The position numbers and the translations under genes are program-made. Under the pieces are notes generated by a model. It did no database searches. It saw only the letters and a list, made by a program, of their open reading frames with translations, and was not told the origin of the DNA. Positions 10,232 to 11,484 of a DNA stretch of 64,000 nt are shown here, piece after piece; the first letter of the stretch is position 1, and every line of letters begins with the position of its first letter. The stretch comes from Octopus bimaculoides (taxonomy: Eukaryota): NCBI RefSeq assembly GCF_001194135.2, contig NC_068981.1:127429507-127493506 (forward strand), in the 5' to 3' direction.

Positions 10232-11484
10232 GTCAGCAGTATGGTCAGCAGCAAGCTTACGCCCAGCAGCAGTATAATTCACAGCCACCATACACTCAAG
10301 GTCAAGGACAGCAGTCTTACACTCAACAACCAGGTTACAGTCAAGCTCCAGGACCTGGTGGAGGTCCAGCACCTGGACCCAACATGTCTCCACAGTCGCA
10401 GTACACAAACTATCCTGGCGGTGGTCAGTCTCAAACACGCTATAATCCCTATAATAGACCTCCTCAGGGTCCACCAGGTATGCCACCTTCTGGACCTCTT
10501 CCACCTGGTTCCATGCAAGGTCCACCTGGTTCTATGCAGGGTCCACCCGGAGGCATGCAGGGTCCCCCTGGTGGCATGCAAGGTCCACCTGGTGGCATGC
10601 AGGGTCCACCTGGTGGCATGCAAGGTCCACCTGGTGGCATGCAAGGTCCACCTGGAGGTATGCAAGGTCCACCTGGAGGTATGCAAGGTCCTCCTGGAGG
10701 CATGCAAGGTCCTCCTGGAGGCATGCAAGGCCCACCTGGCTCTATGCAAGGCCCACCTGGCTCTATGCAAGGCCCACCTGGCTCTATGCAGGGCCCACCA
10801 AGTTCCATGCAGGGCCCACCAGGATCTATGCAAGGCCCACCAGGATCCATGCAAGGCCCACCTGGTTCTATGCAAGGTCCCCCAGGGTCCATGCAAGGCC
10901 CACCAGGTCCCATGCAAGGTCCACCAGGATCCATGCAAGGCCCACCAGGATCTATGTCTGGCCCACCTGGTTCTATGTCTGGTCCACCGGGTTCTATGTC
11001 TGGGCCACCAGGCCCCATGTCTGGACCACCAGGTCCTATGTCTGGTCCACCAGGACCCATGTCTGGTCCACCAGGTCCCATGTCTGGTCCACCTGTTTCC
11101 ATGTCTGGTCCTCCTGTTTCCATGTCTGGTCCTCCTGTTTCCATGTCTGGTCCTCCTGGTTCTATGTCTGTTACTCCAGTTTCTATGTCTGGTCCAATGG
11201 GGCCTAGTGGTGGTGGGCAAATGAATCCCAACAGCAACCAAATGGGTGGACAAAACCAAATGCCAGTGTCAGGAAGTAATTCAATGCAACAGTCAAATAG
11301 TATGAGCAACAGTGTTAGCGGAGGAGGGGGTGGAGGGGGTGGTGGTGGTGGCAGCGGTGGTGTTGGCAGCAACAGTAATAGCAGTGGTGGTGGAAGTAGC
11401 AACAGTGGTCAATCACACATGCCTAATAGCCAGATGTCTAGTCAAGGTCAGACAGGTTACTCTTACAACCAAAACCAGTATTAA
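10232..11484 (+). CDS. SS18: SS18-like gene, terminal exon with heptad-repeat expansion
   Basis: Polypyrimidine acceptor ...tctcttggcag, phase 1, open to TAA at 11482-11484. [26 protein letters not shown] and the terminal GYSYNQNQY resemble recalled SS18 C-terminal QYPNYPQGQGQQYGGYRPTQPGPP and YGYDQGQY. Confidence 0.8.
10513..11205 (+). repeat. Coding 21-bp tandem repeat, 33 units
   Basis: ATG recurs every 21 nt from 10513 to 11185: 21 MQGPP(G/S)(G/S/P) units, then 12 MS-type units. Confidence 0.97.

Follow-up and report, generated by a model that had tools for sequence, protein, structure and literature searches.

An in-frame heptad array in the SS18 tail of Octopus bimaculoides: apparent constraint on the peptide and most likely expansion from a single seed heptad

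Results

SS18 gene and exon structure

The stretch of DNA analysed here (the window) consists of 64,000 nucleotides (nt) of the Octopus bimaculoides genome (NCBI RefSeq assembly GCF_001194135.2, contig NC_068981.1, positions 127,429,507 to 127,493,506 of the forward strand) and holds the 3' exons of the gene for SS18, a subunit of the BAF/SWI-SNF chromatin remodeller whose N-terminal SNH domain binds BRG1. The terminal coding exon of this gene contains 33 head-to-tail copies of a 21-nt unit that encode a heptad array of 231 amino acids (aa), which appears to be translated in the SS18 frame and to be under purifying selection, and which most likely grew from one seed heptad in the lineage of this species. 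Exon coordinates are given as window positions, with negative values for positions upstream of the window.

In a six-frame profile search of the whole 2.34-Gb genome (window at C1:127429507-127493506), Pfam SSXT (PF05030) matched two consecutive exon-sized segments on the same strand, at distances of 1.3 and 4 kb upstream from the window start, with scores of 43.8 and 36.2 bits against a curated cut-off of 26.2 bits. No second SSXT locus above the cut-off was found in this search, and a weak match on contig C27 (E 2.7), which fell below the cut-off, was not counted as a paralogue. Exons were placed by tblastn and by reading of splice sites with 20 kb of upstream sequence included, and those encoding the SNH domain sit 1.3-19 kb upstream of the window. 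Thus, an earlier reading of the window from its letters alone (the sequence-only reading), which had identified the gene as SS18 on condition that an SNH domain be encoded upstream, was borne out. The spliced model consists of seven exons and 698 aa; it matched Pfam SSXT with 105.2 bits over profile positions 2-61 of 62 and the SS18 portion of the crystal structure of SS18 with BRG1 (PDB 7VRB) with an E value of 3.9e-27. By these matches, the array-bearing exon is the terminal coding exon of the genome's single SS18/SSXT orthologue.

Mutation of I32, L54 or A65 of human SS18 abolishes BRG1 binding (PMC9117659), and the corresponding positions of the model, as aligned to the SS18 chain of 7VRB, are occupied by I, L and A. 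The protein is predicted to be incorporated into BAF and to bind BRG1/BRM. A QPGY-type region is also present, in that residues 275-355 are Q/P/G-rich, contain 11 Tyr and can be aligned with the end of the human QPGY domain; the whole model contains 21 Tyr. Among database sequences, SS18 as annotated in the cuttlefish Acanthosepion pharaonis (P0001) was nearest, being 76% identical to the model in the part that precedes the array. A literature search for work on cephalopod SS18 or on the heptad repeat found none.

All seven exons lie on the forward strand. Exon 1 (-18928..-18848; MSLTFVQSQPKGKAQPPPPPNSNTIQK), exon 2 (-3969..-3893) and exon 3 (-1380..-1299) are upstream of the window. Exon 4 (654..795; APGQVNPNQGMPGG...NAPPPG) follows the SNH domain, is rich in Met, Pro and Asn and matched SS18 residues 79-129 by tblastn; its splice sites (acceptor tttag/GC and donor CAG/GTCAGT, the slash marking the boundary) enclose an open frame that joins in frame. 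Splice sites were likewise read for exon 5 (7558..7695; STGMPMTSAGGQPGYNGPQQSMSGYSRPQMNQQQQAMMTQGKSRA), which is in frame and colinear with cuttlefish P0001. Exon 6 (8201..8524; PPMNTPNAMNNQPGYGPP...MPPPNAYRRSPSQ) is in frame, and its donor at 8524 is supported by the exon 6/7 junction, SPSQ/GQQY, which is the same in P0001. Exon 7, the terminal coding exon (10232..11484), begins at the acceptor ttggcag/GT and ends with a TAA codon at 11482-11484. A scan for poly(A) signals was uninformative because the sequence is AT-rich and AATAAA is common in it.

Directly 3' of the exon 6 donor, positions 8525..8542 (+) encode GRLNMQ in frame, and a further GT donor, equal in phase to that at 8524, comes directly after them. 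The read-through GRLNMQGE is kept in the exon-6 open reading frames (ORFs) of decapodiforms (P0131-P0133). The site at 8542 may be a tandem alternative donor of exon 6 that adds 6 aa.

Layout of the terminal exon and anatomy of the array

The open frame that contains the array extends from 10207 to 11484, with the exon starting at 10232. The exon opens with a Tyr-bearing, QPGY-like block (10232..10458, +), which lies 5' of the array, contributes 11 of the 21 Tyr of the protein (residues 285-355) and aligns both to the QPGY region of SS18 and to a decapodiform contig (L024) described below. A Pro/Gly linker follows (10459..10512, +), kept in decapodiforms as PAPPGPPGIPPSGPPPGS, and its terminal PPGS marks the 5' boundary of the array. 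Downstream of the array are a tail rich in Asn, Ser, Gly, Met and Gln (11206..11454, +) and the C-terminal motif GYSYNQNQY (11455..11481, +), which is identical in L024. The tail includes a second lineage-specific expansion, of poly-Gly/Ser/Asn (approximately 11290-11400), with a period-15 repeat reported by Tandem Repeats Finder at 11341-11370; the decapodiform counterpart is a short GSGGSGGSGGGG, seen as a gap in the alignment with L024. About 336 consecutive residues (356-690), between the Tyr-rich block and the last three Tyr of the protein, are without Tyr.

When cut in the SS18 reading frame, the array (10513..11205, +) resolved into 33 units of 21 nt without a single indel, a number of indel-free copies that is far beyond chance. 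The coordinates and the count of 33 in-frame heptads given in the sequence-only reading were exact, its placement of the array in frame within the C-terminal low-complexity tail held, and the flanks were as it had described them (i.e., segments resembling QPGPP and YGYDQGQY of vertebrate SS18). Tandem Repeats Finder reported a period-21 array at 10500..11166 (31.8 copies, 88% matches, 0% indels, score 480) and a higher-order period of 63 nt at 10918..11196. ATG opens every one of the units, and the consensus peptide is M-[Q/S]-G-P-P-G-x. The most frequent peptides were MQGPPGS (10 units) and MQGPPGG (9 units), followed by MSGPPGP (4 units), MSGPPGS and MSGPPVS (3 units each) and four singletons, MSGPMGP among them. 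The units form two blocks, namely an MQGPPG[S/G/P] block of units 1-21 (10513..10953, +) and an MSGPP[G/V][S/P] block of units 22-33 (10954..11205, +) that shows the 63-nt period and ends in two degenerate units.

Pro and Gly each make up 30% of the array (60.2% together), followed by Met (15%), Ser (13%) and Gln (9%), and there are no charged and no aromatic residues. Met accounts for 34 of the 231 residues (14.7%), at a spacing of exactly 7. Thus, the Tyr-free, Met/Pro/Gly-rich composition previously claimed for the array was confirmed. AlphaFold2 predicted neither helices nor strands for the array, with a mean predicted local distance difference test (pLDDT) score of 43, which as the outcome of a single-sequence run is weak evidence. 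From the composition and this model we infer that the array is intrinsically disordered. With its P+G content and pLDDT score the array belongs by composition to the Pro/Gly-rich, elastomer-like disordered class, and the label "elastomer-like" used in the sequence-only reading holds for composition only.

Coding status and constraint

The repeat is free of stop codons in each of the three forward frames, and an open frame therefore proves nothing about translation. The pattern of variation among units was informative. At the DNA level 27 different sequences occur among the 33 units, but only 9 peptides, and the variation is concentrated at the third positions of Gly and Pro codons. In Nei-Gojobori comparisons of all unit pairs in the SS18 frame, the proportions of synonymous (pS) and nonsynonymous (pN) differences were 0.54 and 0.17, for a pN/pS of 0.31, whereas ratios of 1.51 and 2.41 were obtained in the other two forward frames. 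Within the MQ block pN/pS was 0.14, and within the MSGPP block it was 0.16-0.26. In all or nearly all of the 33 units, Met occupies position 1 and G-P-P positions 3-5. Since the variation is biased to third positions, the pN/pS ratio is frame-specific, no base has been gained or lost and the two flanks occur in one exon of a relative, it appears that translation of the array proceeds in the SS18 frame and that purifying selection acts on the M-x-G-P-P-G-x pattern.

Decapodiform counterpart of the array-bearing exon

When the cuttlefish protein was used as query in an exhaustive HMMER search, the matches included ORF fragments the size of single exons, derived from cephalopod data that are unassembled or unannotated. 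Among these, P0133, 95% identical to cuttlefish exon 6, lies on a 58.7-kb contig (ENA ERZ21867824), of which 17.8 kb were taken as L024. The last exon of L024 (8222..8704, 161 aa), approximately 780 nt downstream of its exon 6, is colinear with the window exon from the first residue through the identical GYSYNQNQY. At the position of the array L024 reads PPSGPPPGS-MGPGGPP-GGQMNPGNNQM, and cuttlefish P0001 reads ...PPSGPPPGGMGPGGPPG. Decapodiform SS18 shares with the window an identical exon structure and the flanks of the array, PPSGP(L/P)PPGS and GGQMNP(N/G)(S/N)NQM, but both decapodiform sources contain one heptad-like MGPGGPP in place of 33 units, and the decapodiform last exon encodes 161 aa as opposed to 416 aa in the window. 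Because a decapodiform has the same exon with only PPGS-MGPGGPP-GG, the array most likely arose through expansion of a single seed heptad within the window lineage, and this lineage is most likely octopod.

The SS18 protein of the window species differs from those of decapodiforms at 20-24% of positions, and the decapodiform fragments are 94-96% identical to cuttlefish SS18, values that agree with the window being octopodiform. P0001 (407 aa) agrees as far as ...GGMGPGGPPG, continues with an unrelated ATHGTTGTALLCYPPRDL and is without the GYSYNQNQY end of L024; this derailment of its C-terminus is probably an error of the gene model. An exact look-up of the contig of P0001 gave no match. Decapodiform Logan contigs L025-L029 end just short of the last exon. 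In protein and HMMER searches for octopod SS18 proteins that include the last exon, the only cephalopod sequences returned were P0001, ORF fragments of exons 5 and 6 and non-orthologous repeat proteins.

Age and duplication history of the array

In Logan contigs of a related species (L018-L023; SRR11869385, -86, -87, -90, -91, -94) exon 6 is identical in amino acid sequence to that of the window and differs by 7 synonymous changes, for a synonymous divergence (dS) of 0.105; the aligned region is 91% identical overall and less so in the flanking introns. These contigs stop within 300 nt of exon 6, before the last exon. The mean pS of 0.54 between array units is approximately five times the exon-6 dS between the two species, and most of the array is therefore predicted to be older than their split. 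By the same comparison, congeners and probably many octopods are predicted to have the array, and decapodiforms and Nautilus to be without it. Units identical to their neighbours occur in four runs (7=8, 9=10, 11=12=13 and 29=30) that amount to five adjacent pairs, and duplication has therefore been recent as well.

SS18 tails of lophotrochozoans and chordates

Tails were measured after the conserved R(Y/F)xP(Y/F)xR anchor of each orthologue. The window tail extends for 341 aa (Met 12%, spaced by exactly 7 in 33 intervals), that of decapodiform L024 for 88 aa (Met 7%), that of Patella for 54 aa (Met 13%) and that of Pecten for 140 aa (Met 12%). The SS18 proteins of Patella (P0135/P0278), Pecten (P0007), Lineus (P0004) and Tubulanus (P0169) share with the window protein a stretch rich in Met, Gln, Gly, Pro and Ser between RxNPYxR and G(Y/F)xYNQxQ(Y/F), and ends related to GYSYNQNQY are YPYNQNQY in Tubulanus, FGYIQNQF in Lineus, FGYNSPQY in Pecten and FQYNQGQF in Patella. 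A homogeneous tandem array, in contrast, was seen in none of these four. The Patella and Pecten tails are shorter than that of the window and irregular, with Met spaced by 3-11 residues; the M/Q/G/P/S-rich tails of Lineus and Tubulanus are long, by eye longer than those of Patella and Pecten, and that of Tubulanus contains short QMPGQGPx quasi-repeats.

Vertebrate SS18 and SS18L1 (CREST) are orthologous to the window protein and share with it the SNH domain, the BRG1-contact residues, a Met-rich middle and a Tyr-bearing Q/P/G block near the C-terminus. However, vertebrate and amphioxus SS18 end about 25 residues past a (Y/F)xP(Y)xR-type anchor (tails of 25 aa in each case) and have no Met in this part, whereas 231 of the residues past the anchor in the window protein form a Tyr-less, perfect-period heptad array. 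The absence of the array from vertebrate SS18, which the sequence-only reading had stated, is thus upheld. That reading had also described the array as an insertion and had named a pan-lophotrochozoan distribution as a finding that would speak against it. As judged from these alignments, a Met/Gln/Gly/Pro tail ending in G(Y/F)xYNQxQ(Y/F) is an old feature of lophotrochozoan SS18, present before any array, and the novelty in the window lineage is the conversion of this old tail into a long, homogeneous array of exact period. Thus, the regular 33-unit array is new, but the Met-rich tail in which it lies is not.

Similar repeats in other proteins and elsewhere in the genome

A search with the C-terminal part of the model returned no SS18 orthologues but did return the C-terminal tails of teleost WDR33, a CPSF subunit, which contain 12-20 tandem MQGPPGN or MQGPQGG heptads (P0105, P0104); local identity to the SS18 array reached 82%. 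A CstF64-like protein (P0130) and an unnamed ENA protein (P0128) also contain related repeats, of the form GxMQxPP. Since WDR33 and SS18 are unrelated proteins, the likeness of their heptads is regarded as convergent. By this resemblance the heptad has recurred as a low-complexity solution among nuclear proteins and is not unique to SS18, and its convergent occurrence in WDR33 hints that the sequence is favoured and not arbitrary.

In a six-frame search of its own genome the array was unique. Membership of the heptad in a dispersed minisatellite family or in a domain shared within the genome was rejected, the next matches being 15-45% identical over the stretches matched and those examined being unrelated repeats. 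Among these were a 1041-aa open frame with GPDG(K/R)xY-type repeats at C13:10381250-10383859 (L007, L009-L014) and two minisatellites of 21-nt period that are open in several frames, one at C26:7470463-7471047 (L011; SDGFNSI/ELKPSEM) and one at C10:26223239-26223826 (L015, L016; SSNLEGS).

Two further classes were considered for the array and rejected. A collagen-like Gly-X-Y repeat does not fit a period of 7 in which Gly occupies positions 3 and 6 (and sometimes 7) and Met breaks the register in every unit. The consensus ligand of GYF domains is PPG followed by a hydrophobic residue (W/F/Y/M/L/I), as in the tails of SmB/B', whereas the residue after PPG in the array is S, G or P, and three units read PPV. 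The only PPGM lies in the upstream linker, where the decapodiform has PPGI.

Other features of the window

Decayed non-long-terminal-repeat retroelement ORFs were noted at 2242..5901 (+), inside SS18 intron 4 and with a zf-RVT match (E 2.4e-07), at 33361..34749 (-) and at 39063..40667 (-), the last with an RVT_1 match (E 1.6e-29) and a PHD/C1-like zinc finger. Gaps of N interrupt the latter two. Intergenic runs of N occur at about 24400-25200, 26140-26870, 33430-34350, 39070-39560 and 42280-42370, and none is near the SS18 exons. Perfect microsatellites, (TTC)n at 42174-42279 and (CTT)n at 42367-42476, lie on either side of the gap at about 42.3 kb.

Discussion

Probable amplification of a seed heptad and a possible spacer function

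The account that we favour, with a probability of roughly three in four, is that a seed heptad of SS18 was amplified in frame and is maintained under constraint as a disordered spacer that may modulate self-association. The 21-nt unit would have been amplified from a single heptad-like seed by replication slippage or unequal exchange, with an outcome of 33 units and 231 aa, or about one third of the protein of about 698 aa. The array would then act as a long, uncharged, disordered spacer devoid of aromatic residues between the Tyr-rich, QPGY-like block and GYSYNQNQY. Self-association and phase separation of human SS18 depend on the Tyr of its QPGY domain, which also drive the recruitment of BRG1 into the condensates (PMC9117659). 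By analogy, the array may retune the phase behaviour of BAF, as the sequence-only reading had proposed: the spacer would dilute the density of stickers and so adjust, but not create, Tyr-driven self-association or condensates of SS18, while a regular lattice of weakly hydrophobic Met could add weak contacts.

Several points weigh against this account. The copy number is that of one assembly of a repeat, in a window that has many N gaps elsewhere. Translation is concluded from the substitution pattern and from colinearity with relatives, and the pN/pS ratio, obtained among paralogous units that evolve in concert and may undergo conversion, is a non-standard form of the dN/dS test; moreover, what this ratio shows is constraint on composition and not adaptive function. 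The poly-Gly/Ser/Asn expansion within the same exon fits a disordered tail that is generally tolerant of slippage. Exact look-up of the spliced models and of the last-exon ORFs (with ATG or TTG start) found no record in a protein collection that may omit the genome of the window, and the occurrence of the array throughout octopods is a prediction.

Other explanations of the array

The array could instead be a neutral by-product, i.e., a slippage-prone 21-nt minisatellite in a tolerant disordered tail, with selection acting only against frameshifts, stops and aggregation-prone residues. This explanation, which we regard as a serious though less likely alternative, draws on the independent expansion of poly-Gly/Ser/Asn in the same exon relative to decapodiforms, on the range of tail lengths among the four lophotrochozoans measured (54, 88, 140 and 341 aa), on the identical adjacent units, which indicate ongoing slippage, and on the existence of other open minisatellites of 21-nt period in the genome. 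The sporadic occurrence of similar heptad arrays in unrelated nuclear proteins can also be read in its favour. However, near-invariance of Met1 and of G-P-P at positions 3-5 despite a synonymous divergence of about 0.54 is tighter than a rule of "anything polar" would require, and almost the same heptad has arisen independently in teleost WDR33.

A specific new function for the array, either as a Met-lattice switch sensitive to redox state or temperature or as a multivalent proline-rich ligand platform that recruits a BAF partner, is in our judgement unlikely. The exact periodicity of its 34 Met, the constraint on the peptide pattern and the convergent heptad of WDR33 would suit such a function, and a precedent is provided by a Met-rich domain in which reversible oxidation reportedly controls phase separation (Kato et al. 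2019, cited in PMC10237644). Against this, any partner or redox response is hypothetical, and the residues that follow PPG in the array are not the hydrophobic ones of the GYF consensus. A narrower proposal, that the array is a selected, octopod-specific tuning module, a Met lattice on a Pro/Gly scaffold through which redox state or temperature would control the condensation of SS18/BAF, convergently with the MQGPPGN heptads of teleost WDR33, would if true mean that "Met-heptad" regulators of condensates have arisen repeatedly and form a class of their own in nuclear machines, but is considered quite improbable.

Location of the array outside the mature protein, whether because the assembly has mis-joined or inflated the repeat or because the array is an intron that is spliced out, is highly improbable, in that the many GT and CAG/G contexts of the repeat (possible cryptic splice sites), the many assembly gaps of the window and the lack of an exact protein record for the model and its exon ORFs are outweighed by the contiguity of both flanks in one decapodiform exon whose frame the array keeps, by third-position-biased variation specific to the SS18 frame, by the absence of N runs near the terminal exon and by the 27 distinct unit sequences, which make a collapse or duplication artefact unlikely for the whole array.

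Significance

The array is noteworthy for its size, its regularity and its evident constraint, for the natural control provided by decapodiforms and for the convergence with WDR33. CREST, the SS18 paralogue, belongs to the neuron-specific BAF complex of vertebrates, and in the octopus genome SS18 is the only BAF subunit of the SS18/CREST type. Together, the octopus array and the array-less decapodiform exon constitute a natural pair of constructs for the effect of spacer length and Met on a sticker-driven condensate. The case shows how a low-complexity tail that is old and irregular can be made into a homogeneous array by one lineage and, should the array prove neutral, would be a clean example of composition constraint in a tolerated coding minisatellite.

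Comparison with known systems

Elastomers such as elastin and abductin share with the array a P+G content in the range of 60%, but they are extracellular and cross-linked and have no sequence relationship to it; mechanical elasticity of the array is not expected, SS18 being a nuclear protein. The Met-rich low-complexity domain of yeast Pbp1/ataxin-2, which reportedly undergoes phase separation controlled through reversible Met oxidation, is likewise a disordered domain with many Met, but is unrelated in sequence, and its Met are not periodic. The closest likeness in the unit itself is to the arrays of teleost WDR33, which consist of a near-identical 7-residue unit in the disordered tail of a nuclear protein, although protein and lineage are unrelated and the resemblance is one of convergence and not of homology.

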